Counted from the stretch's first letter, positions 1 to 33,724 are shown. The stretch: DNA of 64,000 nt from Callorhinchus milii (GCF_018977255.1 NW_024704771.1:2232001-2296000); one strand, 5' to 3'. Numbers and translations are program-made. The notes: generated by a model from the sequence alone, not told the origin.

Positions 1-3000
1 CCAACTCTCACACTGATCAGGTCGTCAGACAGGATGAGCTGAGGATGGGCTGTGTCAGGATCCAGAGTGACTGTAACTAGAGTGAGAATCAGAACATTAC
101 TCAGAACAGTGAACCACACTTACAGCTATAAATAAAATAATCTTTAGCATCACACATTACACACTGTGTAATACATCAACATCTCGTGGTAACAGAATCC
201 AGAAAAAAGGTTCACTGTATGTGTGTGTGTGTGTCAGGGGTGGGGGGTGATGTGAGGGTGTGTTTTGTGTGGGGGTGTAAGTGACGGTGTGTGTGTTGGA
301 GGGGGAGGAAAGCGAAGGCCGCGATGTGGAAATGTTGACATTTACATTTTGGAAAAGTAAACCAGTCCTGGCAGCACAAACCTGTAAATTGTTCTTGTTC
401 ATGATTTTAGGATCTTGTATAACCATGGATTAGATTTCCCCGGTTGATGGATTGTGATGAACATGGACTACTTTTTCCAGTTTTCCCATCTCTCTGGAGA
501 AAAATTATATTCCTGCACTTTGCATTTGTTGCTCTGAACATTTCCTCAAATCACAAAGGCAGAGTCTGCCTATTTTCCTCTCACCTTCTGATTGAATTTT
601 CTGATATTTCCACTGACCTGTTTTCCACCCAAGAGTCTTATTTGAAAAATTATAATATATTTAACTCTGCAAGACTTTTATAATAATAATCCTTGTGTTT
701 GATACAGTGCTTATCACATCATCAAACCAGAATATACTCTAAAGTGAATTGACTGTGTGATTTATGGGAGAAACATGGCATCCAGTTTGCACTCAGAAGC
801 GTTGCACCAACAGTCCTGGGGTGAGGGATCAATTTTATTTGGGGGATTTGTTGACCAGGGGAAACTCCCTTCTCTTGTCGAGTTCTGCCACGGGATCTTT
901 AATGGCCACCAGAACAGGCAGACAGGACCTCGGTTTAACATCGCATCTGAAGGACACCTCTGTCAATACAACACACCCCCAGCACTGAATTGGAGCATCA
1001 GCTTAGACGATGTGATTCCAAGATCCGATGTGAGATTCTGACTCAGAGGCGAGAAAGCTCCCACTGAGCCCGGCTGACACATCTTTTATCCCTCCAGGAT
1101 GACTGTGTTCATTCTACATGTCACTGACCAATCCATATCTTATGGACCACTTTGTAACAGAGTGTAACCGATTGCAGGAGTTCCTTTCAGAGTGGACAGT
1201 CCCAGTGTTTGACAATGAACGTGGCAGGTTTATGGGAATATTGTGTTCCCAGGTTACTGAGACTCTTACCTGCGTAGGGGGTGAACTTTCTCCGCTCTGG
1301 AAACAAGAAGAAAGGAGAATTAATCAGTTTCACAGCTGCCGCACACGCAGATGAGGAGTATGTTCATGTTTGAAGTCAATGTACATGAGTGAGTCCATGG
1401 AAAGCCACTGCCCCTCACACTGAGAGCTGCCGCTGTGTTCAGCCAATTCACACCAGCCACAGATTATAATGTGTGAGATGCTGATAACTTAATTAGAGTT
1501 TTCTCTATATATTAATTATAATCATTGTAATAATTCTTGCATTTGATATAGAGCTTTACCACGTCATTGAGATGTCTCAAAGCGCATCACAGGATTTACT
1601 GCTAAGTGAATTGACTGTATTTTGTGAGCGAAACACAGCAGTCAATTGTGCACAGCAGTGTCACACAAACAGACATGGATTGAGTGACCCAAATTATTAT
1701 TTTAAAAATAATAATAATAATAATCCTTGCATTTGATATAGTGCTTTTCACGTCTGGAGGACTTCCCAAAGCGCCTCACAGAATACACTGTAAAGTGAAT
1801 TGATTGTATATTTGTGGGCGAACGCGGCAGCCAATTGCGCACAGCAGTGTCCCACACACAGTCATGGATTGAAAATGACCAATTTATTATTGTTTTGTTT
1901 TTTTGGAGGGATTATTATTAGGCTCTGTGTGGATTAAGGGAATTTAACCAAGGTTTCGCCCTCTGCCTGGGATTGAACTCAGGTCTCTCACTTGCAAAGC
2001 GACTGCTCTAAATTTTGCTTTTAAAGAGATTATTACACCTGGAAAAGTGAAGATTAATTGACAAACAGCCAGGTTCCCACTTATTGCTGTGTAAACAGAG
2101 GCACGTGGAGTAAGGAAACTGGCCTTAGGTTTTTCCCTGTTTAGGAATCAAACCCGTGACCTCTCGCTTGTGAGGCGAATGCTCTAAACACTGAGCTACA
2201 GGACTCCATAATTCAAAAGATTAGCCAAATCAGCAAGGCCATAATAATGTGCTTGATAGTATTTACTATAAATAATAATATATATCGTAATGTACTTTAT
2301 GCTTTATTTTTTTCTAGTAGGTCTGAAATTAAGTTATTTCTGGTTAAGTTTGTAATACATTGGAATTAATTTGGTAGTTTTGATTTACTTTTTCTCAGCT
2401 TTCAGTGATCAGAAACCCTCCACATGAGGTGATATCACTGGTATATTTCCTTTATAATTTACTTCAGAAATGTTCAAGATCTGAAACCATTTATCAATAA
2501 AAATCTGAATTTAATTCAGTTTCCACACTCCACACGCCTAATAATAATCCCTCAAGAAAAAAAACAATAATAAATTGGTCACTTCAATTTGGTTGCTGCT
2601 TTTTGCCCATAAATATACAGAATACACTTTGCAGTATATTCTGTGAAGCACTTTGAGACGTCTAGAAGATGCGAAAAGCATTATATTAAATGTAAGGCTT
2701 ATGGTCATTATTATTATTATTATTACTGTGATAAAGGACTTGTGAGGCCTGAAAAGTGAAGCTGTTTATAAAATTTGACCAGGATTTTGTGGAACATTTT
2801 CCAACAAGGAAGGAGGCAGCCCGAGCACTAACTCTCGGCAATGACGGTTGGTAAGAAAGCTGTGTAAGAGAAGGGGAAGTGTACCAATTAATAACCATAA
2901 CATAACTCGAATTGATATAGAATATATAGAATATATAGAAATATAGACTGTATCTTACAGCACAGAAGGAGGGCATTCGGCCCATCGTACCCGTGACATG

Positions 3001-3967
3001 TTTTTGAAATAACTACCAATTAGTCCCATTCTCCTGCTCTTACCCCATAGCTCTGCACATTATTGCTTTCAAAGTAAATCTATCTTTTTGGTTCATGCAC
3101 TACCTTCATCTCAGTCGATTATTAGTATCTCAGGATAAATATTGGGGTTTGTTAACATTTATCTCTCAGTCACGAAGATTGTGTGAAACACATTTTATGC
3201 AACTATTTGGTGTTGAGGTGATCTAATGTCAATGAGATTTCATCACAACAGAGATTGTTGTATAATTTTGCTTACCCAGTCTTTTCTGAAGGTCTGTTGA
3301 ATAAAAAATTGAAATTGTTAGTATAGACACATTGTTACTACATTGACAAACTGATTATGTATAGTCGTGTAGCTCAGTGGTTAGAGCACTCGCCTCACAA
3401 GCGAGAGACCTGGGTTCGATTCCCGGTAGTGCGACATGTTGGGCAAGTTTCCTTACTCCACATGCCTCTGTTTACCCAGCAGTACATAGAGACTGGTTGT
3501 TAGTGGATTGGTGTATGGCTTTTCCGGGAGTAATAATTCCTTCCAAAAACTATTAATAATTTGATCACTCAATCCACGACTTTGTTGGCCACTACTGAGC
3601 GCAATTGGCTGCAGTGTTTTGCCCACAAAATATACAGTCAAATAAATTTGCAGTATATTCTATGAGGTGCGTTGTGACCTCTCGCAGATGTGAGAAGGCG
3701 CTATATCAAATGCAAGGATTATTATTATGATGAATACAGTTTTATGTTGAGGGATAATCTACAGGGTGTTTAGCAACCCCAGGTTTTCTTTCTTAAAATG
3801 ATTTTTTATTTTCTAAGCCTACAGAGGAGGTGAAACAAGCTATCAGATATACATATCAACTTGTTACTCCATCATGGTACAGAAGATGTTGCACCAACCT
3901 TGGCAACGGATCATTATCTGCCATGAAAATGGTGGAGCTCATTCACTCTCACCGATCCTCTGGACGT
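1..3967 (-). CDS. 3' half of a butyrophilin-like gene (copy A'): microexons 3947-3967 (21 nt), 3276-3293 (18 nt), 1270-1296 (27 nt) and start of the B30.2 exon (1-76, runs off the window)
   Basis: Near-identical to 17535-21500. All exons are AG/GT-bounded and phase 1, reading (D)[40 protein letters not shown]. No TM, IgV or leader exon is visible upstream (N gaps at 4204-5057). Confidence 0.8.
720..1080 (-). mobile_element. tRNA-derived SINE, family 2 (resembles the shark SacSINE1/DeuSINE type)
   Basis: The minus strand reads GGCTCAGTGGGAGCTTTCTCGCCTCTGAGTCAGAA...GTTAAACCGAGGTCCTGTCTGCC. Paralogues at ~18250-18610, 23588-23770 (+) and 33400-34610 (split by a CR1). The family name is from recall, not a search. 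Confidence 0.6.
1711..2010 (-). mobile_element. tRNA-derived SINE, family 1 ((TAA)n tail)
   Basis: Same body and (TTA)n tail as the full copy at 49475-49795; head partly truncated. Confidence 0.8.
3363..3730 (+). mobile_element. tRNA-derived SINE, family 1
   Basis: A box TAGCTCAGTGG and B box GGTTCGATTCC, followed by the family body and an (ATT)n tail. Confidence 0.85.
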
Positions 3968-5057
3968 CTAAATACAGTTAAACCTCAGCCTCGCCTCCTT
4001 GCTTGCTTCCTTTAAGACCCATGTTAAGAATCTCCTCTTCGACCCTGCTTTCAATCACCCTGATTCCCCATGCCATACACCCTCCCCAATCCCAACCCGC
4101 AGCTTGGGTCCAAAACTCTGACTGTCTAATGCCTTGGGACGTTATCAAGCTACCGGCCCATCTCCAACCTCCCCTTTCTCTCCAAGGTCCTGGAAAGAGT
4201 TGTNNNNNNNNNNNNNNNNNNNNNNNNNNNNNNNNNNNNNNNNNNNNNNNNNNNNNNNNNNNNNNNNNNNNNNNNNNNNNNNNNNNNNNNNNNNNNNNNN
4301 NNNNNNNNNNNNNNNNNNNNNNNNNNNNNNNNNNNNNNNNNNNNNNNNNNNNNNNNNNNNNNNNNNNNNNNNNNNNNNNNNNNNNNNNNNNNNNNNNNNN
4401 NNNNNNNNNNNNNNNNNNNNNNNNNNNNNNNNNNNNNNNNNNNNNNNNNNNNNNNNNNNNNNNNNNNNNNNNNNNNNNNNNNNNNNNNNNNNNNNNNNNN
4501 NNCACACACTCACACTCACATTACNNNNNNNNNNNNNNNNNNNNNNNNNNNNNNNNNNNNNNNNNNNNNNNNNNNNNNNNNNNNNNNNNNNNNNNNNNNN
4601 NNNNNNNNNNNNNNNNNNNNNNNNNNNNNNNNNNNNNNNNNNNNNNNNNNNNNNNNNNNNNNNNNNNNNNNNNNNNNNNNNNNNNNNNNNNNNNNNNNNN
4701 NNNNNNNNNNNNNNNNNNNNNNNNNNNNNNNNNNNNNNNNNNNNNNNNNNNNNNNNNNNNNNNNNNNNNNNNNNNNNNNNNNNNNNNNNNNNNNNNNNNN
4801 NNNNNNNNNNNNNNNNNNNNNNNNNNNNNNNNNNNNNNNNNNNNNNNNNNNNNNNNNNNNNNNNNNNNNNNNNNNNNNNNNNNNNNNNNNNNNNNNNNNN
4901 NNNNNNNNNNNNNNNNNNNNNNNNNNNNNNNNNNNNNNNNNNNNNNNNNNNNNNNNNNNNNNNNNNNNNNNNNNNNNNNNNNNNNNNNNNNNNNNNNNNN
5001 NNNNNNNNNNNNNNNNNNNNNNNNNNNNNNNNNNNNNNNNNNNNNNNNNNNNNNNNC

Positions 5058-8191: not shown

Positions 8192-9723
8192 ATGTCGAAG
8201 AAAATGTCTCGGACGCTCTTGGAGAAGATAGAAGTGTTAGACAGAGTCAAGATGGAGCCGCGAGGAACTCCGCTACGAGAACTGGCCAGAAGACTCGGGG
8301 TCAAGAAGTCGACCCTGGGCGACATCATCGCCAGTGAGATGAAGCTGCGCCACACAGCGTCCTCCTTAGCCGAGGGCGATGTTGGTCTGCGTAAGAAGAG
8401 GGATCGCAAAGGCAAAGATCCCCAGGTGGAGCACGCTCTCCTTCTGTGGTTCCAAAGGGCGTCCACTGAGGGGCAGCTGCTCAATGGGCCCATCCTCAAA
8501 GCCAAAGCAGAGAGCCTGGCACGTGACCTCGGGAAGCCGGGCTTCACGGTGACTGACGGCTGGTTTAGCCGCTGGAAGGCACGTAACAACATCGTGTACA
8601 GACTGCTTCCCGGAGAGCTGAAGACCGCTGCCGTAGAGGGCGCTGACACCAGCAGCGCGCTGCTCTCTTCCTACGCCGCCGATGACATCTACAACGCAGA
8701 GGAAACGGGACTGTACTACCGTGCGGCGCCCGACGGCTCATTGTATTTCCACCGAACGGTGCTGAGCGGTGTGAAGAGGGCGATGGACAGCATCGCGCTG
8801 ATGGTCTGCGCCAACATGACCGGCAGCGACCGGCGCAAACTGCTGGTCATCGGGAAGAGCCAGTGCCCTCGCTGTATGAAGGGAGTCGACCTCACTGTTC
8901 TGCCCGTCATCTATAAGGCCAATAAGATGGCGTGGATGACGAGAGGGATCTTTAAGGATTGGCTGATGCAGTGGGACACAGAGCTGGTCGAGCAGGGGCG
9001 TAAGATTCTTGTTTTCATGGACAGCGCACCATGTCACCTGCCCATTCCAACCCTAGAGAACATCTGCCTGGAGCTGATTCCCCGGACACCACTCTGATCC
9101 AGCCCATGGGTCAAGGAGTCATCCGAAACCTGAAGCTCTCCTACCGCGAGGAGCTACGAAAGCGCCTCCTGGACGCCATCGAAGGCAACGTGATCAGTCC
9201 CCACGCCACGGTGGGAGAGGTGGTGAGACACATCAGCCTACTGGATGCCATCGGTATGGTTGCCAGGGCCTGGGAGAGCATGAAGCCTAAGATGATATCC
9301 GACTGCTTCGCAAAGGCCGGGTTTGTGACTGGTGACGCTGCTCCCTGCACTGAGGCTGAGGGGAGGACAAGTGCAGAGGCCGAGGGCGAGAGGCAGATCA
9401 CTGACCAGTTCCTGGACATTGACGCTGATCTACTCTGCCGTGATCCCCAGGACCACGAGGCCATCGTGACTGAAGCTGTGGCCGCCGAGCGCTTGCTAGT
9501 CGAGAACGACAGTGACAGCGACTCTGAGGAGAACGAGGCCCCGTCTGTGACGGCCGGCACAGCTCTGACCGGCCTGCGAGAGGCAGAAAGCTTCTTACTA
9601 AAGAGCGGACTCTACGGCAAGTGTTCGAACGCACTTCACGACATTGTTGCGAGCATCAGAGAGAGACGCCACACTGATCTGGTGCAGTCTGACTTGAGAG
9701 AAGTTTTCAATAAAAAAGTTTAA
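8192..9723 (+). CDS. Tigger transposable element-derived protein (TIGD4/TIGD6-like, CENP-B HTH + DDE_1), ~510 aa, one apparent 1-nt deletion at 9080-9083
   Basis: ORFs 8192..9097 and 9031..9723 join into one pogo-family protein: N-terminal HTH (LEKIEVLDRV...RELARRLGVKKSTLGDI), CENPB HTH (VEHALLLWF...NGPILKAKA...GWFSRWKARNNI) and DDE region (DDIYNAEETGLYY, LVFMDSAPCH, LIQPMGQGVIRNLKLSYR). A plausible splice acceptor (CCTCTCACACAG, 8161-8172) precedes the ATG. Confidence 0.9.
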
Positions 9724-11152: not shown

Positions 11153-13053
11153 TCAATCCACTTCCTCCACGGTTGGGCCCGTAGATGGACAGCTCTTGCC
11201 CGATTGCTCGCTCCCCGCTGCCCCTCCCTGCCTCAGCCTGGCCATGACAGGACTGCACACCCTCTCCAGCTCCTTCAGCTGGTGCTCAAACTCTTCCTTC
11301 TCCGCCGTCTGGTTTCCATCCAGCCAGGCAATGACCTGTCTGCACTTGTCCAGCGCCTGCCTCCTTTCCTCCTCGCCCACCTTGCCCTCTGTGCTCTTGT
11401 CCTCCATTGCACTTTTGGCTGCGTAGACGAACGACTCCAGCCCGTTCTTGGCCGCCACCCTCTCCCGCTGCAACTCGTCATCCACCTTGTAGTTCTCGGC
11501 CTCCTGCACCATCCTCTCAATCTCCTCCTTGCTCAGCCGACCCTTCTCGTTGGTGATGGTGATCTTGTTCTCCTTGCCTGTGCTCTTGTCAGCAGCCGAG
11601 ACGTTCAGGATACCATTGGCATCGATGTCGAAGGTGACCTGGATCTGCGGAACCCACGGGGGGCCGGGGGATTCCACTCAGCTCGAACTTGCCCAGGAGG
11701 TTGTTGTCCTTGGTCATGGCTCTCTCACCCTCATACACTTGCACCAAGACGCCGGGCTGGTTGTCGGAGTAGGTGGTGAAGACCTGGGTCTGTTTGGTGG
11801 GGATGGTTGAGTTCCTCTTGATGAGGGCGGTCATCACGCCTCCCGCCGTCTCCAGCCCCAGGGACAGAGGAGTCACGTCCAGCAGGAGAAGGTCCTGCAC
11901 GTTCTGAGACTTGTCACCCATCAGGATGGCGGCTTGCACAGCCGCACCATAAGCCACTGCCTCATCTGGGTTGATGCCCTTGTTCAGCTCTCGGCCGTTG
12001 AAGAAATCCTGCAGAAGTTTCTGGATCTTCGGGATGCGAGTGGAGCCACCGACGAGGACCACATCTTGGATCTGAGACTTGTCCAGCTTCGCGTCAGTTA
12101 ATGCTTTCTCCACTGGCTCCAGGGTCCCTCTGAACAGGTCCCCATTGAGCTCCTCAAACCGTGCCCTGGTGATGGAGGTGTAGAAGTCGATGCCTTCAAA
12201 GAGGGAGTCGATCTCAATGCTGGCTTGGGTGCTTGAAGACAGAGTCCTCTTTGCCCTCTCACAGGCTGTCCTCAGCCTCCTGACCGCCCTCTTGTTCTGG
12301 CTGATGTCCCTCTTGTGTTTCTCTTGAACTCCTGGATGAAGTGGTCAACCATGCGGCTGTCAAAGTCCTCGCCCCCCAGGTGGGTATCACCAGCCGTGGA
12401 TTTGACTCGAAGATCCCACCATCGATGGTGAGGACGGACACATCGAAGGTGCCCCCACCCAGGTCGAAGATCAGGATGTTCCTCTCCCCGTGGCCCTTCT
12501 TGTCCAGGCCGTATGCGATGGCGGCCGCCGTGGGCTCGTTGATTATTCGGAGGACATTGAGCCCTGCTATCACTCCGGCATCTTTGGTGGCCTGGCGCTG
12601 GGAGTCGTTGAAGTAAGCGGGCACCGTGATGACAGCGTTGGTGACCTTGGAGCCCAGATAAGCCTCAGCGATCTCCTTCATCTTGGTTAGAACCATAGAG
12701 GAGATCTCCTCAGGGTTGAAAGTCTTGGGCTCTCCCTTGTACTCAACCTGCACCATGGGTTTTCCCCCCTGGCTCAACACCTGGAAAGGCCAGTGCTTCA
12801 TGTCCGCCTGCACCACAGGGTCATCGAACTTCCTCCCTATCAGCCTCTTGGCATCAAAGACGGTGTTGGGGGGGTTGAGGGCCACCTGGTTCTTGGCCGC
12901 CTCCCCGATCAGCCNNNNNNNNNNNNNNNNNNNNNNNNNNNNNNNNNNNNNNNNNNNNNNNNNNNNNNNNNNNNNNNNNNNNNNNNNNNNNNNNNNNNNN
13001 NNNNNNNNNNNNNNNNNNNNNNNNNNNNNNNNNNNNNNNNNNNNNNNNNNNAT
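11153..13053 (-). CDS. HSP70: Cytosolic heat shock protein 70 with intronless CDS (HSPA1-like); N-terminal ~46 codons fall in the N gap; four apparent 1-nt deletions
   Basis: Diagnostic motifs [68 protein letters not shown] and C-terminal GPTVEEVD. Frame breaks at ~12406, ~12319, ~11668 and ~11654. The start is inferred from ...CAAT|N at 13051-13053. Confidence 0.95.
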
Positions 13054-13300: not shown

Positions 13301-14047
13301 GCTCTCGGTCACTCTGTGGCTGTGCTCTCGGTCACTCTGTGGCTCTGCTCTCGGTCACTCTGTGGCTGTGGCTGTGCTCTCGGTCACTCTGTGGCTCTGC
13401 TCTCGGTCACTCTGTGGCTGTGGCTCTGCTCTCGGTCACTCTGTGGCTGTGGCTCTGCTCTCGGTCTCTCTGTGGCTGTGGCTGTGCTCTCGGTCTCTCT
13501 GTGGCTGTGGCTGTGCTCTCGGTCACTCTGTGGCTGTGGCTCTGCTCTCGGTCTCTCTGTGGCTGTGGCTGTGCTCTCGGTCTCTCTGTGGCTGTGGCTC
13601 TGCTCTCGGTCACTCTGTGGCTGTGGCTGTGCTCTCGGTCTCTCTGTGGCTGTGGCTGTGCTCTCGGTCACTCTGTGGCTCTGCTCTCGGTCACTCTGTG
13701 GCTGTGCTCTCGGTCACTCTGTGGCTCTGCTCTCGGTCACTCTGTGGCTCTGCTCTCGGTCACTCTGTGGCTCTGCTCTCGGTCACTCTGTGGCTCTGCT
13801 CTCGGTCACTCTGTGGCTGTGCTCTCGGTCACTCTGTGGCTGTGGCTGTGCTCTCGGTCACTCTGTGGCTGTGGCTCTGCTCTCGGTCACTCTGTGGCTG
13901 TGGCTCTGCTCTCGGTCACTCTGTGGCTGTGGCTCTGCTCTCGGTCACTCTGTGGCTGTGGCTCTGCTCTCGGTCACTCTGTGGCTGTGGCTCTGCTCTC
14001 GGTCACTCTGTGGCTCTGCTCTCGGTCACTCTGTGGCTGTGGCTCTG
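13301..14047. repeat. Minisatellite (23-29 bp unit GCTCTCGGTCACTCTGTGGCT[GTGGCT]) between the HSP70 TATA box and start codon
   Basis: About 750 bp of tandem units read directly. Confidence 0.95.
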
Positions 14048-14049
14048 AC

Positions 14050-14180
14050 TCTCTGTATATGGCATCAGCTGCTCGGGCTGTGGGCGGGTCTGTCGCCCAC
14101 GGCGGCCAATCAGAGGGCGGTGCGGTGACGTCACGGACAGAAACCCCCAGAAGCTTCCGGGTTGGCGGCCAATCAGAGCG
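14050..14180 (-). promoter_or_regulatory. HSP70 proximal promoter
   Basis: TATA-like CATATACA (14054-14061, minus); GC boxes (14082-14087, ~14115); two GCGGCCAATCAGAG CCAAT boxes (14106, 14169); perfect CRE TGACGTCA (14126-14133); gap-type HSE aGAAa-ccccc-aGAAg-cTTCc (14139-14158). Confidence 0.85.
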
Positions 14181-14229
14181 GCGGAACTGTGGGGAAACCT
14201 CAGGAAGGAACGAAGCGGAGAATCCGCTG

Positions 14230-14900
14230 TAAATCAGGAAAACCGCATCGAAACTTCTGGGAACATCTGGAATTCAGCACAAATACAGCGCAAAAGTGCC
14301 GAAACCTGAAAATCAGCGGCACCTCAGTGTAAAGGGCAGAAACACCCGAAAATCAGCACAAACTTCAGGAAAAATGCCCCCAAACAGCTGGAAATCAGCT
14401 GAAAATTAGCGCAAAAGTTTCCAAACATCTGGAATCAGCCGCGACTTCTTCTTAATATGTGGAGATCGCGATCACTGGAAATCAGCCGAAACTTTGGGAA
14501 TGTGTCGCTGGAAACCAGACAAACGTTCACGTGAGTGTTCGACCGCTGGTTATCAGCTGAAACTTCTGGAAAGTGCTGTAAACCATTGGGAACTCATATC
14601 AAATTGTTCGCAATTTTTGCTGAAATTTTGGGGAAGTGATAGACACAGCGGGAGATCCGCTGAAACTTCATTGAAAGTGTCCAAAACATCACGAAGTCAA
14701 AGTTTATATGAAGTTATTATTATTGAAGTGAAGATGTGTAAAGTTACTGGAAATCAGCAGAAGTTTCTCGACAGTGCAGCTGGAAATGAGCCAAAAGTTC
14801 ATGTCAAGTGCCGACACCACAGCTCATCAGCTGTAACTTCGAGAAAGTGCTGCAAGAAATTTGCTGAAGTTTCCAGTAAGTGCCGGAATCAGTTGGAAAT
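14230..14900. promoter_or_regulatory. Distal array of heat-shock-element units in a degenerate GGAAATCAGCnGAAACTTC repeat
   Basis: Perfect 3-unit HSE tGAAa-cTTCt-gGAAa at 14558-14572; 2-unit HSEs at 14249, 14363, 14661, 14759, 14837 and 14865. Confidence 0.55.
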
Positions 14901-14939
14901 GTACATTAAATTGTTCAAATGTGAACAGCCACTCAGACA

Positions 14940-15240
14940 ACAACACGATTACATTTGTATAGCGCCTTTCACGACGGGAGGACGTCCTGAGGCGCTGGAC
15001 AGAGTACAGCATTTCAGACCTGAGTGGGGTCGGGGGGGAGGGGGAGGGGGAGGGGAGAGGCCGATGGTGTGGTCGATGAGGAGGGTCTTGAGGCGAGACT
15101 TAAAGGAGGCTAAGGAGGGGGCGAGGCGGAGTGATGGGGGATGGATTCCCAGAGGTTCGGGCGGAGTGGCTGAAGGCTCTCCCGCCAATGGTGGGCGGGT
15201 GGGTCGGGGGACGTTGAGCAGCCAGAGCCGGCTGAGCGGA
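14940..15240 (-). mobile_element. L2-clade LINE 3' end
   Basis: [11 protein letters not shown]-type terminal ORF2 motif plus the GGACGTCCTCC...GTGAAAGGCGC tail and (GTT)n. Confidence 0.75.
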
Positions 15241-15244
15241 ATTG

Positions 15245-15612
15245 AATTGGCTAAAGGGAGTACAATTGCCAAGTTTTAAGTCTGCAGATGATACTAAGCT
15301 AAGACAAGCAGTGAACGGAGAGGAGGATAGTAGCAGAATATAAGAGGACGTAGACAGAGTGGTAGAATGGGCAGACATGTGGCACATGAAGTTTAATGTG
15401 GAGAAATGCAAAGTGATGTATTTCGGGATGTGGGACCTCATAGTTGGTACAGTAAATCTTTGAAGGTCGCAGGACAGGAAGACAAAGCTATTTAAAAATA
15501 TATAGGAAATACTTGGCTGTATTAATAGGGGCAAAATTCAGGAAGTGGTACTTTATAAAACACTGGTTAGGCCTCAGCTAGAGTTCTGCAGGGTGCAAAG
15601 GAAATTTACCAG
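15245..15612 (+). mobile_element. CR1 LINE RT fragment
   Basis: Degenerate KxADDTKL...EWADMWHMKFNVEKCKVMYFG. Confidence 0.75.
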
Positions 15613-17083
15613 GTGACATGATTTATACCTCATCAGAAAAGTATGCAATGCAGAGTGTCATGGGCATATTTTTGTGGGCAGATATCTATCGTTGATGAGC
15701 TTAATCCTCAAAATATGAGTATGCACAGTACTCTGCAACAAATCACACTCCCTTCCATATTCTGCAATAACATAGCGAAAGGAGTCCTCCCACTAAGTCC
15801 TCCCAACAAGGAATCCTCCCACTGAGTCTTCCTATTGAGTCCTTCCAACAGCCGCCATCCCAAAGGCACATTTTCTTAATCTTAAGGATACCTAAGGGAA
15901 GATCAAGCCTTCCAAGGAGAACAAAAATGCCACACAAAGGAGAGAAGTCTGAATAAATGAAACTGAAGAACAAAGAACAGCTCAGTTGGACTTCGACACA
16001 GAACGACATGATCTCAAAACCTGTACATCATGTTCGAAGGAGAAACTGTAAATGTCATCTACATGGAAGCTTTGCAATAACTCAAAGACAATCTGGATCA
16101 CATATAAACTCGTCCGGTTAGCATAGCATTGACAATATCTTTCATTGTTGATGAGCTATGACCCATCGCACATGTATGGGAGTTTTGCTTAAGGTGTACA
16201 TACAGTGTTCGTGGCATGTTAAATGGTTTGTCAGTGCTATCACTGCAATCTACGTTCCATATCGGATCTTTGTTATTATTATAAATTAGAGTTTAATATT
16301 TCTTCAGGAGTTTCAAATATTTTATTTTTCATATATAAACCGAGCTGTCTGGGATAGAAAGATAAAATTATTTAAATAATAATTAAATAATTTTAAACAC
16401 GACTGTGTGTGGGACATTACTGTGTGCAATTGCCTGCTGCGTTTTGCCCACAAAATACATACGCAATCAACTTTCCATTATATTCTGTGAAGGGCTTTGA
16501 GATATCTCGAAGGTGTTATCAGGCCCTATATGAAATGCAAGGATTATTGTTATCATTAATAATCATCTTGTGATTCATTGTTTAATTACATAAACAGATA
16601 AAAGGTATTAAAATGAATATAGTCATCAAAAGCAATCACAAAGGGAGACACAAGGATTGATTATTATTAATAAGAAAAAACAAGTAAAGCTCTGTGTAGA
16701 CAGCGGGTTACGAGTGCTCGAAGGGTCTCAGCACCCATACCCCCTCCTCCCACCCTCCTCCCACAACCTATTACCGTCACCTGTTTAAGGGGAGCTGGGA
16801 GGAAAAAGCCCTGAGGAAGACCACAGTCAGTCTCCTCAACGTCCCCAACACATGGGCCCCTCTTGCCCTTCACCTAACTTGTCAACGGCTGCTCGTCTGG
16901 ACATCATGAGCTCTGATTGGCCGATGGACCTCGGAGTCAGTGGTGAAGAGGGAGGAGAACCCATCTTTGATGATGGCACAGAGATCACATCCGTCTTAAG
17001 GGGAACAGTCCCACTCATCTCCCCGAGAATATTTTCACCCACCGCTTATCAATCTAGTGAATGGCTGAGGGTTTTCCATCTTA

Positions 17084-17610
17084 TTAAGCTCTCACTGAGC
17101 AGATTGTCAGCGGCTCAGAGTTTCCTCCGTCCTCATTATACCAGGGACTGAACAGAGGATAAAGTTTCTCAGTGAAAGTTTGGGTGAAAGTGTGGAGATG
17201 AGCCATGTTGTCAGCGTTGTAAAATGACACCTGTCCCCCCTCATAGTCCAGGAACACTCCGACCTTCCCGGGTCTCTCTCTCGGGGTCAGACAGGTACGA
17301 TGGGAGGTCAGAGCATAATAGACCACACCCATCAGACACACACACCAGACTCCACCCTCTGTGATGGGTTCTTTTCTGTCCACCGACTCTCTGGCTACTC
17401 CCACAATCCAGTCAGTCTTGTTGCCCACCTGCACCTCCCAGTAATGTCCCCCCGACATGTAGCCCTCAGATCCCAGCACAAATGGCCAGTTAATGAACCT
17501 CTCCGGGATGTCCGGGAGCTGCTGCTGTTCATCTCCAACTCTCACACTGATCAGGTCGTCAGACAGGATGAGCTGAGGATGGGCTGTGTCAGGATCCAGA
17601 GTGACTGTAA
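17084..17610 (-). CDS. B30.2 (PRY/SPRY) terminal exon of gene A
   Basis: [17 protein letters not shown]...GHYWEVQVG...[18 protein letters not shown]...[11 protein letters not shown]; acceptor at 17611-17612, TAA at 17084-17086. Confidence 0.95.
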
Positions 17611-20600
17611 CTAGAGTGAGAATCAGAACATTACTCAGAACAGTGAACCACACTTACAGCTATAAATAAAATAATCTTTAGCATCACACATTACACACTG
17701 TGTAATACATCAACATCTCGTGGTAACAGAATCCAGAAAAAAGGTTCACTGTATGTGTGTGTGTGTGTCAGGGGTGGGGGGTGATGTGAGGGTGTGTTTT
17801 GTGTGGGGGTGTAAGTGACGGTGTGTGTGTTGGAGGGGGAGGAAAGCGAAGGCCGCGATGTGGAAATGTTGACATTTACATTTTGGAAAAGTAAACCAGT
17901 CCTGGCAGCACAAACCTGTAAATTGTTCTTGTTCATGATTTTAGGATCTTGTATAACCATGGATTAGATTTCCCCGGTTGATGGATTGTGATGAACATGG
18001 ACTACTTTTTCCAGTTTTCCCATCTCTCTGGAGAAAAATTATATTCCTGCACTTTGCATTTGTTGCTCTGAACATTTCCTCAAATCACAAAGGCAGAGTC
18101 TGCCTATTTTCCTCTCACCTTCTGATTGAATTTTCTGATATTTCCACTGACCTGTTTTCCACCCAAGAGTCTTATTTGAAAAATTATAATATATTTAACT
18201 CTGCAAGACTTTTATAATAATAATCCTTGTGTTTGATACAGTGCTTATCACATCATCAAACCAGAATATACTCTAAAGTGAATTGACTGTGTGATTTATG
18301 GGAGAAACATGGCATCCAGTTTGCACTCAGAAGCGTTGCACCAACAGTCCTGGGGTGAGGGATCAATTTTATTTGGGGGATTTGTTGACCAGGGGAAACT
18401 CCCTTCTCTTGTCGAGTTCTGCCACGGGATCTTTAATGGCCACCAGAAGAGGCAGACAGGACCTCGGTTTAACATCTCATCTGAAGGACACCTCTGTCAA
18501 TACAACACACCCCCAGCACTGAATTGGAGCATCAGCTTAGACGATGTGATTCCAAGATCCGATGTGAGATTCTGACTCAGAGGCGAGAAAGCTCCCACTG
18601 AGCCCGGCTGACACATCTTTTATCCCTCCAGGATGACTGTGTTCATTCTACATGTCACTGACCAATCCATATCTTATGGACCACTTTGTAACAGAGTGTA
18701 ACCGATTGCAGGAGTTCCTTTCAGAGTGGACAGTCCCAGTGTTTGACAATGAACGTGGCAGGTTTATGGGAATATTGTGTTCCCAGGTTACTGAGACTCT
18801 TACCTGCGTAGGGGTGAACTTTCTCCGCTCTGGAAACAAGAAGAAAGGAGAATTAATCAGTTTCACAGCTGCCGCACACGCAGATGAGGAGTATGTTCAT
18901 GTTTGAAGTCAATGTACATGAGTGAGTCCATGGAAAGCCACTGCCCCTCACACTGAGAGCTGCCGCTGTGTTCAGCCAATTCACACCAGCCACAGATTAT
19001 AATGTGTGAGATGCTGATAACTTAATTAGAGTTTTCTCTATATATTAATTATAATCATTGTAATAATTCTTGCATTTGATATAGAGCTTTACCACGTCAT
19101 TGAGATGTCTCAAAGCGCATCACAGGATTTACTGCTAAGTGAATTGACTGTATTTTGTGAGCGAAACACAGCAGTCAATTGTGCACAGCAGTGTCACACA
19201 AACAGACATGGATTGAGTGACCCAAATTATTATTTTAAAAATAATAATAATAATAATCCTTGCATTTGATATAGTGCTTTTCACGTCTGGAGGACTTCCC
19301 AAAGCGCCTCACAGAATACACTGTAAAGTGAATTGATTGTATATTTGTGGGCGAACGCGGCAGCCAATTGCGCACAGCAGTGTCCCACACACAGTCATGG
19401 ATTGAAAATGACCAATTTATTATTGTTTTGTTTTTTTGGAGGGATTATTATTAGGCTCTGTGTGGATTAAGGGAATTTAACCAAGGTTTCGCCCTCTGCC
19501 TGGGATTGAACTCAGGTCTCTCACTTGCAAAGCGACTGCTCTAAATTTTGCTTTTAAAGAGATTATTACACCTGGAAAAGTGAAGATTAATTGACAAACA
19601 GCCAGGTTCCCACTTATTGCTGTGTAAACAGAGGCACGTGGAGTAAGGAAACTGGCCTTAGGTTTTTCCCTGTTTAGGAATCAAACCCGTGACCTCTCGC
19701 TTGTGAGGCGAATGCTCTAAACACTGAGCTACAGGACTCCATAATTCAAAAGATTAGCCAAATCAGCAAGGCCATAATAATGTGCTTGATAGTATTTACT
19801 ATAAATAATAATATATATCGTAATGTACTTTATGCTTTATTTTTTTCTAGTAGGTCTGAAATTAAGTTATTTCTGGTTAAGTTTGTAATACATTGGAATT
19901 AATTTGGTAGTTTTGATTTACTTTTTCTCAGCTTTCAGTGATCAGAAACCCTCCACATGAGGTGATATCACTGGTATATTTCCTTTATAATTTACTTCAG
20001 AAATGTTCAAGATCTGAAACCATTTATCAATAAAAATCTGAATTTAATTCAGTTTCCACACTCCACACGCCTAATAATAATCCCTCAAGAAAAAAAACCA
20101 TAATAAATTGGTCACTTCAATTTGGTTGCTGCTTTTTGCCCATAAATATACAGAATACACTTTGCAGTATATTCTGTGAAGCACTTTGAGACGTCTAGAA
20201 GATGCGAAAAGCATTATATTAAATGTAAGGCTTATGGTCATTATTATTATTATTATTACTGTGATAAAGGACTTGTGAGGCCTGAAAAGTGAAGCTGTTT
20301 ATAAAATTTGACCAGGATTTTGTGGAACATTTTCCAACAAGGAAGGAGGCAGCCCGAGCACTAACTCTCGGCAATGACGGTTGGTAAGAAAGCTGTGTAA
20401 GAGAAGGGGAAGTGTACCAATTAATAACCATAACATAACTCGAATTGATATAGAATATATAGAATATATAGAAATATAGACTGTATCTTACAGCACAGAA
20501 GGAGGGCATTCGGCCCATCGTACCCGTGACATGTTTTTGAAATAACTACCAATTAGTCCCATTCTCCTGCTCTTACCCCATAGCTCTGCACATTATTGCT

Positions 20601-23600
20601 TTCAAAGTAAATCTATCTTTTTGGTTCATGCACTACCTTCATCTCAGTCGATTATTAGTATCTCAGGATAAATATTGGGGTTTGTTAACATTTATCTCTC
20701 AGTCCCGAAGATTGTGTGAAACACATTTTATGCAACTATTTGGTGTTGAGGTGATCTAATGTCAATGAGATTTCATCACAACAGAGATTGTTGTATAATT
20801 TTGCTTACCCAGTCTTTTCTGAAGGTCTGTTGAATAAAAAATGTAAATTGTTAGTATAGACACATTGTTACTACATTGACAAACTGATTATGTATATTCC
20901 TGTAGCTCAGTGGTTAGAGCACTCGCCTCACAAGCGAGAGACCTGGGTTCGATTCCCGGTAGTGCGACATGTTGGGCAAGTTTCCTTACTCCACATGCCT
21001 CTGTTTACCCAGCAGTACATAGAGACTGGTTGTTAGTGGATTGGTGTATGGCTTTTCCGGGAGTAATAATTCCTTCCAAAAACTATTAATAATTTGATCA
21101 CTCAATCCACGACTTTGTTGGCCACTACTGAGCGCAATTGGCTGCAGTGTTTTGCCCACAAAATATACAGTCAAATAAATTTGCAGTATATTCTATGAGG
21201 TGCGTTGTGACCTCTCGCAGATGTGAGAAGGCGCTATATCAAATGCAAGGATTATTATTATGATGAATACAGTTTTATGTTGAGGGATAATCTACAGGGT
21301 GTTTAGCAACCCCAGGTTTTCTTTCTAAAATTAATTTTTATTTTCTAAAACTACAGAGGAGGTGAAACAAGCTATCAGAGATACATATCAACTTGTTACT
21401 CCATCATGGTACAGAAGATGTTGCACCAAACTTGGCAACGGATCATTATCTGCCATGAAAATGGTGGAGCTCACTCACTCTCACCGATCCTCTGGACGTC
21501 TAAATACAGTTAAACCTCAGCCTCGCCTCCTTCCTTGCTGCCTGCAAGACCCATGTTAAGAATCTCCTCTTCGACCCTGCTTTCAATCACCCTGATTCCC
21601 CATGCCATACACCCTCCCCAATCCCAACCCGCAGCTCGGGTCCAAAACTCTGACTATCTAATGCCTTGGGACGTTATCAAGCTACCGGCCCATCTCCAAC
21701 CTCCCCTTTCTCTCCAAGGTCCTGGAAAGAGTTGTCGCCTCCCAACTGCGCTCTTTCCTTTCCACCCATTCTCTTTTCAAACCCCTTCAGTCAGGTTTCC
21801 GTGCTGCCCATAGCACAGAAACTGCCCTGGTCAAGGTCACCAATGATATCCTGACCATCTGTGACCAGGGCTCCCTCTGCCTCCTCGTCCTCCTCGACCT
21901 ATCGGCAGCATTCGATACGGTCGACCACGCTATCCTACTCCACCGCTTGTCCTCCCACCTCAACCTTCAAGGCACTGTCCTTTAGTGGTTTAGGTCGTAC
22001 CTTTCTCACCGTCTTCACTTTGTCTCGACGAATGGCTTCTCCTCCACCCCCCGTACTGTCTCATGTGGAGTCCCTCAGGGCTCTGTCCTCGGTCCCCTCC
22101 TCTTCACCCTCTATATGCTCCCCCTTGGTGACATCATCCGCAGACATGGAGTTAACTTCCACATGTATGCGGATGACACCCAACTCTACCTTTCCTCCTC
22201 TACTCTCAACTCCACGACCACCGATGTCCTGACAGCTGCCTGTCCGACATCGAGTCCTGGACGAGAGACAACTTTCTTCAGCTCAACGTGCGAAAAACCG
22301 AGGCCCTCCTGATTGGTTCGCGTCAGCGCCTCCGCACCTCAGGCGCCGACACCATCAGCATCCAAGGCTGCACTCTCCACCTCTCAAAGCCAGTCAGGAA
22401 CCTCGGCGTTTTGTTCGACCCTGAGCTGTCCTTTCTCCCTCACATCCGCACCACAACTGGCACCGCCTTCCATCACCTCCGGAACATCGCCAGACTACGG
22501 CATTACCTCACCCCTCACGCTGCTGAAACCCTGGTTCACGCCTTTGTCACCTCAAGACTGGACTATGGGAACTCTCTCCTCGCCGGCCTTCCCGCCACCT
22601 CCCTCCACAACTGCAGGTCATTCAGAACTCTGCAGCTCGTGTACTGTCCCGCACCAGGCTTCCGGAACACATCACTCCCACCCACGCTGGCCTCCACTGG
22701 CTCCCCATCCCCCAGAGGATTGATTTCAATATCCTCATCCTCACCTACAAGGCCATTCACGGCCTTGCTCCCTCCTACCTCTCCAACCTACTATCCCCCT
22801 ACCTACCTGCCCGTACCCTCCGTTCCTCTGGCTCCGGTCTGCTCCAGGTCCCCCGCCCCAACCGCCCTACCATCGGTGGTCGGGCCTTCAGCCTCTCAGC
22901 CCCGAGGCTCTGGAACTCTATCCCCCAGTGCCTTCGCCGCTTCCTCCCTCTCCTCCTTCAAGGCCGGTCTCAAAACCTTTCTCTTTGACCGAGCCTTCAG
23001 CTCCCCTCTCGACTCTCTTCCCCCTTCTCGCTCCCTCCCATCCCTCCCCTCACCCTGACCATTTCCCCCCTCCTCGCTCCCTCCCCTCCCCTCACCCTGA
23101 CCATTTCCCCCCTCCTCGCTCCCTTCCCTCCCCTCACCCTGACCATTTCCCCCCTGCTCGGGTCATGACCCAACTGTGCAGCGCCTTGGGACGTCCTCCT
23201 GACGTGAAAGGCGCTTTATAAATGGAATCTTGTTGTTGTTGTTGTCCTCTCAACATGAAAGGAGCTACACACATGTAATTTTGTTCTTATTTCAGTGGTA
23301 CACAATAAAATTAAGGACTTTGAAATACAATCACAATTAGTGTAACAATTGTTTCATAGAAAGTATTTGTTTCATGAAAACAAACAATGTGTGACTTGTA
23401 ATGGGAGATGTTACTGGTGGGAACGTACCTTTGATTTCTCGATGCTGTTTTATACTGTAGCCGACAAGAACACTCAGCACCATTATGGCAAGTCCTAAGA
23501 GCAGTGAGGAAACCATCAAACTCACTGGCATTTTGGGAAAGAAGTCGTCTGTCAAGAAATGTAAATAGACATTTAAAGAAGTGGTGTGTCAGCCTGGCTC

Positions 23601-25152
23601 AGTGGTAGCACTCTTCCCTCTGAGTCAGAAGGTTGTGGGTTCAAGTCCCCATATCGGGATTTGGAATCAAATAGTCTAAGCTGAAGCTCCAGTGCATTGC
23701 TGGAGGTGTTGCATTGTCGGAGGTGCCGTTCTTTGGATAAGATGATAAACTGAGGTCCCCGAGGTCTACCAACCTGGATGATTCAAGGTTTTTTTTCCAT
23801 TTGGCTTTTAACACTGAGGAGACCTTCAAAATCCTCCCTGACCATCCAGTTACTGAGTGTTGTTAAGTTAATGAATTGTTATTTTTGTACAATGTGAATT
23901 TTATCAAATAAAAATGAGTTGTAAACATTACTGACCAATAACATTCAACTCCATCACTGCCTCTTCATACCATTCAGAGTACTCAACGAAGCACGTGTAC
24001 TCTCCGTGGTCTGACACCCGCACATCTTCCAGTCTGAGAGACACATTGCCATTGATAAACTCCTCCACAAACAGTTGTGTTCTGCCTCTGTAGGTTTCTT
24101 TCTGCTTCTGCAGTTGATGACGTCCCTCCTTGTATAAATGCACTGGGGAGTCATATCTTGTCCTGAACCACTTCACTTCCACACCCTCTAGGGGCAGGTC
24201 TGTGGAACACTTACAGTCCAGGACAACATCCGAACCAGCAATGGCTGAGACAGGGAGGGCCGGGCCACTGACTGTGAATTTCTCTGTTTAATAACAAACA
24301 ATGGATAAGTTAGGAATCAACTGACTCAGACAAACTCTGTAATGCAAGATGTCTCCCTCCCGGGTGAGAGAGCGCATTCCATTCCAACAACCTATCTGTG
24401 AAATTTCCATGTCTAGATGGGATGCACGGAAATCTCAGCTTGATTTGGATCCTCTTAAACACGGTAATGGGTTTCTGCATGTGTCAGAATCACGGCTGAG
24501 CAAAAAAAAGTCACTGTGATATCAATTAGTTCCGACATAAACAATGATAATAATCCTTGAGGGACGAGTTCAGAATACAACAAGTGAGATTAATGATGGT
24601 CTTTGTAACAAGAGGAATGTAAATTGAGGTGCTGTCAGGCCTCAACTGAAGCTATGACTTGAGGCAACCAATGTTGAGAAGCTGATCCATGAATTAATCC
24701 CTGGGATGAAATGGTTTAGCTGTGTTGAGAGGCTGTTTAGACTTAGATTATATTCCTCAGCACTGAGGATGTTTAAGGGGTGATCTGATTGAGGTGATTC
24801 CAACGGTGAGGAGCTATTGTAGAGCTATTGGAGAAAATTCCCTTCACGATTATAAGTGAACAACCGAGTTCCTAGTTATTGCAAGGTAAACAGAGAAGGG
24901 TGGAGAAAAGAAACTTGGCTAAAGTTTAGCCCCACCTGGACTTGAATCTTTGAGGCTTTGCCCAACTCCTGGAACATTAGCAGCTGTCAGTGTGTGAATC
25001 ACACTCACTCCCAGCCGCCACCTTCAGCAGCTCTCCCTTTACCCTCAGCAATTTAACACCAACAAAATCAAACAGATTCAATGTGTTTCCTTACCAGCCA
25101 GTGAGAGGGGAAGCGCAAGCCATAGGACCTGAAGAAAGTGTTTCCAGCTCAT
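17084..25152 (-). CDS. Butyrophilin-like gene A with single-Ig architecture (leader-IgV-TM-microexons-B30.2); 372 aa if the 26-nt exon is really 27 nt
   Basis: Exons 25095-25152, 23936-24283, 23429-23548, 21479-21499, 20809-20826, 18804-18829 and 17084-17610. All are AG/GT-bounded and phase 1 and open, except for one missing G in the 18.8 kb microexon. IgC is present only as a relic. Confidence 0.85.
18804..18829 (-). CDS. Pre-B30.2 microexon of gene A (26 nt; 27 nt in paralogues)
   Basis: TTCTTGTTTCCAG acceptor and GTAAGA donor. Four G on the plus strand versus five in the copies at 1270-1296 and 34802-34828. Confidence 0.8.
20809..20826 (-). CDS. 18-nt juxtamembrane microexon of gene A (N-LQKRL)
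   Basis: TTTTTTATTCAACAG acceptor and GTAAGC donor; homologous exons in A', B and C. Confidence 0.75.
20895..21262 (+). mobile_element. tRNA-derived SINE, family 1
   Basis: A and B boxes plus family body; duplicate of 3363-3730. Confidence 0.85.
21479..21499 (-). CDS. 21-nt heptad microexon of gene A (D-VQRIGE)
   Basis: TATTTAG acceptor and GTGAGT donor; conserved in A' (3947-3967) and B (36970-36990). Confidence 0.75.
21676..23243 (+). mobile_element. 5'-truncated L2-clade LINE (RT domain + 3' UTR) in the intron after the TM exon of gene A
   Basis: [15 protein letters not shown]...[17 protein letters not shown]...[13 protein letters not shown]...[13 protein letters not shown]...YADDTQLY, with stops and frameshifts and a (GTT)n tail. 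Absent at the homologous site in copy B. Confidence 0.92.
23429..23548 (-). CDS. Transmembrane exon of gene A (120 nt)
   Basis: [40 protein letters not shown]; CTTGACAG acceptor, GTACGT donor. Confidence 0.9.
23770..23869 (-). pseudogene. Relic of the IgC exon in gene A
   Basis: Matches 55945-56040 of the intact IgC exon of gene C. The acceptor and 5' part are deleted and the 3' end is replaced by a SINE (23588-23770). Confidence 0.85.
23936..24283 (-). CDS. IgV exon of gene A (348 nt)
   Basis: EKFTVSGP...LDCKCS...VEVKWFR...YRGRTQLF...[23 protein letters not shown]...ELNVI; BTN-type V domain, AG/GT-bounded. Confidence 0.95.
25095..25152 (-). CDS. Signal-peptide exon (coding part) of gene A
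   Basis: [19 protein letters not shown] followed by G|GTAAGG; acceptor at 25182-25184; upstream non-coding exon donor CAG|GTAAGT at ~26513. Confidence 0.9.
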
Positions 25153-32400: not shown

Positions 32401-33724
32401 TGAGGAACACTCCGATCTTCCTGGGTCTCTCTCTCTCTCTCTGTCTCTCAGGGTCAGGCAGTTATGATGGGAGGTCAGAGCAAAATAGACCACATCCATC
32501 AGATGCACACACCAGACTCCACCCTCTGTGACGGATTCCTTTCTGTTGACAGACTCTCTGGCTACTCCCACAATCCAGTCAGTCTTGTTGCCCACCTGCA
32601 CCTCCCAGTAATGTCCCCCCGACATGTAGCCCTCAGATCCCAGCACAAATGGCCAGTTAATGAACCTCTTCGGGGTGTCTGGGAGCGGAGGATGGGCTGA
32701 CAGGATGTAACAAACATTTTACAGTCAGGATGAGCTGAGGATGGGCTGTGTCAGGATCCAGAGTGACTGTAACTAGAGTGAGAATCAGAACATTACTCAG
32801 AACAGTGAACCACACTTAACAGCTATAAAATAATCTTCAGCATCACACATCACACTCTGTGTAAAACATCAACATCTTGTGGGAACACAATCCAGAAACC
32901 CGTGTGTGTGTGCGCCAGGGGTGGGGGGATGATGTGAGGGTGTGTTTTGTTTGGGGGGGTGTGAGGGTGTGTGTGGTGGTAGGAGGGGGGGGGAGTATGT
33001 GAGGTAGAAATGTTGACATTTACATTTTGAAACATGAAAACTCTCCTGGCAGCACAAACCTGTAAATGATTCTTTTTCATGATTTTAGGATCTTGTATAA
33101 ACATGGATTAGATATCCCTAGTTTCTGGATTGTGATAAACATGAATTATTTCTCCCAGTTTTCCCATCTCTCCGGAGGAAATGATATTCCTGCACTTTTT
33201 AGTTGTTGCTCTGAACAATTCGTCAATTCACAAAGGCTGTGTCTGCCTGTTTTCCTCTTGCCTTCTGATGGACTTCTCTGATATTTTCACTGATCTGGTT
33301 TCAATCAATTGTTTTATTTGAAAAATTATAATATATTTAACTCAGCTAGAGTTTTCTAATAATAATCTGTGTGTTTGATACAGTGCCATATCACGTCATT
33401 GAGATATCTCAAACCATGATATGCTGTAAAGTGAATTGACTGTATAATTTGTAGGAGAAGCACGGCATCCAGTTTATATGCGGCAGTGTCACAACAGCCC
33501 TGGAGTCAAAAAAAAACATTTATTTGGGAGAGTGGTGACCAGGAGAAACTCTCTTTCCTTTTCAAATTCTGCCACGGGATCTTTAATGGCCATCTAAACA
33601 GGAAGACGGGACCTCGATTTAACATCTCATCTGAAGCATGACAACTCTGACAATACAACACCGCCCCAGCTCTGAATTGGAGCATCAGCTTAGACTATGT
33701 GATTCCAAGGATCCAATGTGAGGT

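Follow-up and report, generated by a model that had tools for sequence, protein, structure and literature searches.

How does a butyrophilin (BTN) come to lose its membrane-proximal IgC domain, and can what is left still be a working gene? The question is raised by a 64,000-nucleotide (nt) stretch of the genome of the elephant fish, Callorhinchus milii (hereafter the window), which matches scaffold MU249860.1 of assembly GCA_018977255.1 with 100% identity. By tblastn and DNA comparison, three BTN-like genes (A, B and C) were found on its minus strand, and the beginning of a fourth B30.2 exon lies at the left window edge. Gene C matches the Pfam domains V-set, C2-set_3 (E=2.5e-21), PRY and SPRY, and its leader (58 nt), IgV (348 nt), IgC (276 nt), transmembrane (TM; 120 nt), two mini- (18 and 27 nt) and B30.2 (512 nt) exons are all phase 1, a seven-exon structure found also in the paralogues D, E and F elsewhere on the scaffold. 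The product of gene A matches V-set (E=1.7e-13), PRY (E=5.6e-22) and SPRY (E=2.9e-22), and no Pfam match to C2-set_3 (IgC) was found in it. A near copy of A, here called A2, lies ~127 kb away in the opposite orientation (locus L002). It is very probable that A, A2 and B represent a Callorhinchus-specific lineage in which the IgC exon was destroyed in the common ancestor by two lesions, leaving a working IgV-TM-B30.2 BTN. An earlier reading of the window made from its sequence alone (the sequence-only reading) had proposed such a receptor for A; its reference to sharks was misplaced, C. milii being a holocephalan (chimaera).

Destruction of the IgC exon

In A, A2 and B alike, the match to C, D and F ends 51 nt into the IgV-IgC intron and restarts at IgC coding nt 123. 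The deleted segment, measured in A against C, D and F, spans 293 nt and comprises 171 intron nt, the acceptor and IgC nt 1-122 of 276; its breakpoints and an 11-nt filler are identical across A, A2 and B. Beyond the surviving exon fossil, a short interspersed nuclear element (SINE) stands in place of the last ~58 nt of IgC, the donor and nearly the entire IgC-TM intron (1.3-2.3 kb), and homology of A to C restarts just 29 nt ahead of the TM exon. At the head of the SINE, an RNA polymerase III A box (TGGCTCAGTGG) and B box (GGTTCAAGTCC) can be read directly; no tRNA was called in the region by ARAGORN or Rfam, and two weak Rfam matches there (E=0.03 and E=0.13), far below gathering scores, were set aside as noise. 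Deletion, fossil and SINE are the same in A2, with 9 differences from A in the 387-nt IgV-TM intron, and B carries the same SINE at the same place, subsequently split by a ~1-kb insertion. Five further diverged SINE matches occur in the window, two of which are duplicates of each other (925-1081 and 18459-18615).

Because C, D and F are mutually consistent, these events are deletions in the A/B ancestor rather than insertions in C, and the common breakpoints and common SINE indicate that the loss of IgC was a single event older than the A/B split. The sequence-only reading, which had put the loss at ~280 bp including the acceptor and the first ~120 coding nt, had described the IgC 3' end as replaced by a SINE and had dated the lesion before the A/B duplication, is upheld on these points, with measured values of 293 nt and 122 coding nt and a SINE that is tRNA-derived, antisense and placed directly after a 93-nt fossil. 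In the proposed course of events, the 293-nt deletion would have taken the IgC acceptor and 5' half in the A/A2/B ancestor and a SINE-associated deletion would have taken the IgC 3' end, the donor and the following intron, after which the IgV exon would splice directly to the TM exon. Since all exons are phase 1, this join is in frame, as had been argued from the sequence; every exon is flanked by AG/GT sites, and the junction is present in a cDNA-derived RefSeq protein. This protein, found in the 90% cluster of the RefSeq gene model at A (XP_042200766.1, P0001 in Table 1), is the 365-amino-acid (aa) 'precursor' NP_001279822.1 / AFK10745.1 / K4FSR3; it contains V-set, PRY and SPRY and no C2-set_3, and its IgV-TM junction joins ...MELNVI to DDFFPK.... 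An NP_ record labelled 'precursor' is of the type that RefSeq derives from mRNA. From this accession type, we infer that its source is the set of 6,778 full-length C. milii cDNAs of Tan et al. (2012; PMC3466250). With the exon destroyed, the short IgV-TM-B30.2 form is the sole possible form. The lineage offers a clean, datable case of domain loss via exon destruction in an immune-receptor family, in which before and after can be compared directly by means of the fossil exon, the shared SINE and the decayed sister copy.

Selection since the loss

Many derived substitutions are common to A, A2 and B, as is an in-frame deletion of 9 nt in B30.2, and these shared derived states identify the three as a clade. 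In B, the 5' two-thirds of IgV are lost, the remainder has a 2-nt deletion and the IgV donor is dead (GT>TT), while B30.2 contains an in-frame TGA and indels of -4, -1, +14 and -1 and has no 3' end. Judged from these lesions, B is clearly a pseudogene, and the proposal that it decayed while the domains of A stayed open is confirmed. Selection was assessed by NG86 estimates of omega (the ratio of nonsynonymous to synonymous divergence) and by polarising A/B differences over 715 comparable coding columns with C-F as outgroups. Omega was 0.50-0.60 for A against C-F, at a synonymous divergence (dS) of 0.24-0.29. After the A/B split, the A lineage acquired 11 nonsynonymous and 7 synonymous changes and no stop, compared to 41 nonsynonymous and 4 synonymous changes, plus stops and frameshifts, in the B lineage (Fisher p=0.009; p=0.025 without the scrambled stretch of B). 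In non-coding (intron) sequence, A and B are a distance of 0.17 apart and differ by 13.5 indel events per kb; half this distance predicts ~61 changes in 715 columns under neutrality, compared to the 18 that were polarised to A. The neutral chance of retaining an intact 1,098-nt open reading frame (ORF) is ~0.01 when only substitutions are considered and ~5e-5 when indels are included. These comparisons support constraint on the A lineage relative both to B and to the introns.

Two further observations concern B30.2. A stretch of ~180 nt is identical between A (window ~17490-17310) and B (~32655-32475), where the surrounding introns differ by 15%, and is likely, on this pattern, to be a gene-conversion tract. 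Among the IgC-bearing paralogues, omega of B30.2 exceeds 1 (C vs E 1.88, C vs F 1.30, E vs F 1.54), which may point to diversifying selection acting on this cytoplasmic sensor domain or to a dS made very low by conversion.

Reading frame and duplicates of gene A

Between the TM and B30.2 exons of A lie two mini-exons, 4a and 4b, which the sequence-only reading overlooked. Comparison with XP_042200766.1 showed a four-exon model of A (350 aa) to be incomplete, exposing 15 extra residues that correspond to 4a and 4b. Mini-exon 4b measures 26 nt in A, with a C-run of 4 at 18811-18814, compared to 27 nt in B, C, D, E, F, A2 and Z, the duplicate of part of A at the left window edge (C-run of 5 in Z), and the full transcript of A is consequently out of frame ahead of B30.2. 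The claim that all exons other than IgC are open therefore holds for the leader, IgV, TM and B30.2 of A and fails at mini-exon 4b, with its 1-nt deletion. No rescue of the 26-nt exon by splicing was found: its donor, CAG/GTAAGA, has no GT one base away, and an AG six bases inside the B30.2 exon of A does not restore the frame as an alternative acceptor. Skipping of 4b would restore it (356 aa), and nothing supports such a form. In A2, all six exons are present, 4b is 27 nt long and the ORF is intact; A and A2 differ by two amino acids (two nonsynonymous changes, no synonymous ones), the diagnostic codons being K21/R21 and R74/H74.

Several points weigh against a working IgC-less gene. The six-exon transcript of A shifts frame at 4b and stops 20 codons into B30.2, and the cDNA-derived protein matches no genomic copy exactly, neither A nor A2. 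The family is fast-evolving, with pairwise omega of 0.56-1.33 among C-F compared to ~0.5 for A; the ratio of nonsynonymous to synonymous changes in the A lineage is, taken alone, not significantly below neutral (binomial p=0.11); and gene conversion over the ~180-nt stretch of B30.2 that A and B have in common could distort the lineage counts. The earlier claim that A is a functional gene divides accordingly: that the lineage is still a working gene is supported by the cDNA-derived protein, the intact A2 and the constraint, but the copy in the window carries the 1-nt deletion in 4b.

There are two potential explanations for this deletion. It is quite possible, if somewhat short of probable, that the C-run of 4 in A, as a homopolymer miscall, and the A/Z duplication, as a segment duplicated falsely, are assembly artefacts and that there is one gene, with the intact 365-aa ORF given in RefSeq. 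Z (window 1-4203 plus 3.4 kb outside the left edge) lies 17.5 kb downstream and is a 99.5% copy of A 21739-14088, which takes in the 3' half of the gene; the two sides differ by ~27 substitutions and 13 small indels. Mini-exon 4a and B30.2 are identical on the two sides, and the sole coding difference is the C4 of A against the C5 of Z in 4b, as an assembly error would have it. Indels, mostly in short runs, make up 13 of the 40 differences, far over the usual indel:substitution ratio, and B, A2, Z and the cDNA-derived proteins all imply a 27-nt 4b. However, the two copies lie ~9.9 kb apart, with HSP70-like fragments and a Tigger-like transposon in the unrelated sequence between them, and the ~27 substitutions are partly clustered, as expected of real divergence. 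XP_042200766.1 consists of the four-exon model of A plus the 15 residues; its coding sequence runs from the ATG of A (25152) to the stop codon of Z, ~450 bp outside the left window edge, with a RefSeq gene length of 25.6 kb. The RefSeq protein is intact because the model joins the 5' exons of A to the 4b and B30.2 of Z across 17.5 kb, and the record is flagged here as joining exons of two near-identical duplicates, as is a possible homopolymer error in the assembly.

Alternatively, and with a rather smaller likelihood, the frameshift is real, and A encodes a short-tailed IgV-TM protein that lacks B30.2 or is a very young pseudogene, leaving A2 as the working IgV-TM-B30.2 gene. The end of the six-exon transcript shortly into B30.2, the integrity of A2 and the exclusively nonsynonymous differences between A and A2 are consistent with this explanation, and since the stop is in the last exon, a truncated mRNA from A would probably escape nonsense-mediated decay. 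However, the B30.2 exon of A is still identical to those of Z and A2, so that any loss in A would be extremely recent, and a sequencing error fits the same data.

Other differences among the copies are noted briefly. RefSeq predicts an isoform X2 of A (P0121, 347 aa) that uses an internal AG in the TM exon (...CTCTTAG/GACTTGCC..., window ~23494) and loses 18 residues, including half of the TM segment. Two insertions in the introns of A are without counterpart in A2. The first (21674-23244) is a 1.6-kb element with long plus-strand ORFs and no Pfam match, and the second (19237-19544) is an insertion of ~308 bp (19544-19241 in A) with a 93% match to the C intron (49771-49469) and several more diverged matches across the window. 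A tandem 189-nt pair at 19061-19405 is mirrored in Z at 1528-1872.

Family, fold and possible role

Like canonical BTNs (BTN1A1, BTN2A1, BTN3A1; BTNL3/BTNL8), gene A has a signal peptide, an IgV with the canonical Cys pair and Trp (C43, W58 and C117, in invariant or near-invariant alignment columns), a single TM helix (a hydrophobic 23-mer), heptad mini-exons (18/27 nt; 26 nt for the second in A), phase-1 exons and a cytoplasmic B30.2 in one last exon, and common descent is evident from the exon structure and flanks that it has in common with the C. milii BTNs. Unlike canonical BTNs, it lacks the membrane-proximal IgC (C2-set_3), the exon being physically destroyed, and its IgV stands on a stalk of ~8 residues. 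In a maximum-likelihood tree, A falls inside a C. milii-only clade of IgC-bearing BTNs with a Shimodaira-Hasegawa-like approximate likelihood ratio test (SH-aLRT) value of 99, bearing out the suggestion that its layout was derived independently from a canonical BTN. The tree included ERMAP-like proteins of bony vertebrates (the human ERMAP sequence was left out), which group with bony-vertebrate BTNs far from A, and on this tree the possibility that A is an ERMAP orthologue was rejected. ERMAP and ERMAP-like proteins have the same IgV-TM-B30.2 order, but they are only 42-46% identical to A, the layout of which arose recently from an IgC-bearing gene whose IgC fossil is kept. The same product is also predicted, through phase-1 exons, for IgC-skipping isoforms (Cetorhinus X3, Chelonia BTN3A3 X3, Pelodiscus X3); those forms are optional and their genes retain the IgC exon, whereas the A lineage has the short form only. 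Human BTN3A2 is a BTN3 paralogue without B30.2 that keeps IgV-IgC and works with full-length partners. Like the A lineage, it is a BTN-cluster paralogue minus one domain, and it resembles the truncated product of A if the frameshift is real, but the A lineage lost IgC and kept B30.2. The IgV-TM-B30.2 layout is a known one, the protein has had database entries (RefSeq, UniProt) since the 2012 cDNA project, and the finding alone reveals no new mechanism; literature searches found no paper describing the loss of IgC in the NP_001279822.1 lineage. Phase-1 exons make butyrophilin ectodomains modular far beyond mammals.

Structure prediction yielded two confidently folded domains. The AlphaFold model of the 365-aa protein (42 homologues) has a mean predicted local distance difference test (pLDDT) score of 90.3, with an IgV sandwich (pLDDT >90), one helix (144-189) and a B30.2 (pLDDT ~95 despite its 3-residue deletion) that superposes on the B30.2 structures of TRIM21 and BTN3A1 with a TM-score of ~0.9. 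By sequence, the closest PDB entries are those of BTN3A1, BTN2A1 and BTNL3/8, and the best full-length matches are the BTN3A1 and BTN2A1 cryo-electron microscopy chains. The predicted product is a type I membrane protein with a signal peptide and an IgV on its short stalk, in which a single helix covers both the TM and two juxtamembrane heptads and leads to a B30.2 in the cytosol. By analogy with other BTN/BTNL proteins, it may form dimers, either homotypic or with full-length neighbours, by way of the TM/juxtamembrane helix and B30.2, and its IgV would be held much closer to the membrane when presented to a lymphocyte receptor.

The sequence-only reading proposed a more specific role for A, under which the IgC-less protein would be dedicated to its full-length neighbour (A to C and, likewise, A2 to D) as a heteromeric partner or antagonist, comparable to BTNL3/BTNL8 or BTN2A1/BTN3A1. 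At two loci (C...A and D-A2), a full-length gene has an IgC-less gene next in line in the same orientation, and this recurrence hints at pairing. Full-length gene D lies directly upstream of A2, and the D-A2 spacer consists of the C 3' flank and then the A 5' flank, a composition which indicates that the window carries ~18 kb extra compared to the D-A2 locus, B included. A further hint is RefSeq XP_042200683.1 (838 aa; L002 1501-27117), a read-through model from the same 90% cluster that fuses D with the IgC-less A2 and that reflects either an error of annotation or co-transcription. In addition, A and C show conservation of their TM and juxtamembrane exons. However, tandem arrays yield such adjacency anyway, and A is the most divergent of the local clade; a dedicated partnership is considered unlikely. 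Slightly less likely still is the broader proposal that, through destruction of the exon, a short-ectodomain BTN was fixed in holocephalans and retained beside full-length paralogues as an obligate modulatory subunit of BTN heteromers, altering the height or geometry of IgV toward gamma-delta T cells; if true, this role would parallel, anciently and independently, the way in which tasks are divided in mammals among BTN3A1/3A2/2A1 or BTNL3/8. Finally, it is very improbable that the entire IgC-less lineage is a transcribed, functionless relic in decay, as the decay of B, the frameshift in A, an omega (~0.45) that is not low and the p=0.11 of the A lineage alone might suggest, given an ORF survival far beyond neutral expectation, the significant contrast with B, the confident folds of both domains and the recent duplication that kept the ORF in A2.

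Table 1. Positions of the BTN-like genes, their exons and associated elements in the window
Feature	Position	Strand	Remarks
Gene A	25152-17084	minus	
A exon 1, leader	25095..25152	minus	58 nt, ends phase 1; identical to N-terminus of RefSeq P0001
A exon 2, IgV	23936..24283	minus	348 nt, phase 1/1; Pfam V-set E=1.7e-13
Deletion-1 breakpoint with 11-nt filler	23870..23881	minus	identical in A2 and B
IgC fossil of A	23777..23869	minus	93 nt (coding nt 123-218 of 276); without acceptor or donor; stop in old frame
tRNA-derived SINE	23583..23778	plus	196 nt, antisense to gene A; A and B boxes
A exon 3, stalk and TM	23429..23548	minus	120 nt, phase 1/1; part of helix 144-189 in model
A mini-exon 4a	20809..20826	minus	18 nt, DLQKRL
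A mini-exon 4b	18804..18829	minus	26 nt; frameshift if included
A last exon, B30.2 (PRY+SPRY)	17084..17610	minus	527 nt including stop, open; identical to Z copy
A-side of duplication	14088..21739	minus	intron part, 4a, 4b, B30.2, 3 kb of 3' flank
Z-side of duplication	1..4203	minus	continues past window start; 4a 3293-3276, 4b 1296-1270 (27 nt, intact), B30.2 start at 76
Other SINE copies	925-1081, 18459-18615, 33608-33708		
Pseudogene B	~39352-32371	minus	
B leader	39352-39295	minus	
B IgV, 3' third	38784-38681	minus	2-nt deletion; donor GT>TT
B IgC fossil	~38614-38536	minus	
B SINE halves	38534-38435 and 37434-37349		
B TM exon	37311-37192	minus	
B mini-exon 4a	36012-35995	minus	
B mini-exon 4b	34828-34802	minus	27 nt
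B B30.2	32772-32371	minus	stop, indels, 3' end missing
Gene C	58981-48218	minus	canonical 7-exon BTN, 452 aa; identical to RefSeq P0004
C exons	58981-58924, 56728-56381, 56158-55883 (IgC), 53570-53451, 52913-52896, 51689-51663, 48729-48218	minus	

Several other elements were identified in the window. Between Z and A, a Tigger/pogo-like transposase (CENP-B_N, HTH_Tnp_Tc5 and DDE_1) is encoded in two overlapping ORFs on the plus strand at 8192-9723. On the minus strand at 11153-12885, three ORFs in overlapping frames cover Pfam HSP70 positions 55-211, 313-464 and 459-598, with E-values down to 5e-77. With its shifted frames and missing middle, this region, whose 5' end meets an N stretch at 12915, is probably either a pseudogene of HSP70 or a copy that indel errors have damaged. 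Within gene C, the leader-IgV intron contains an RVT_1 ORF of a long interspersed nuclear element fragment (57120-57938, minus strand). Minisatellites occur at 13337-14053 (a 29-nt unit x 26.6, adjoining an N stretch), at 52244-52424 (a 20-nt unit x 9) and at 50099-51046 in a C intron, where a GT/G-rich 22-nt unit x 42 yields a spurious 591-aa ORF.

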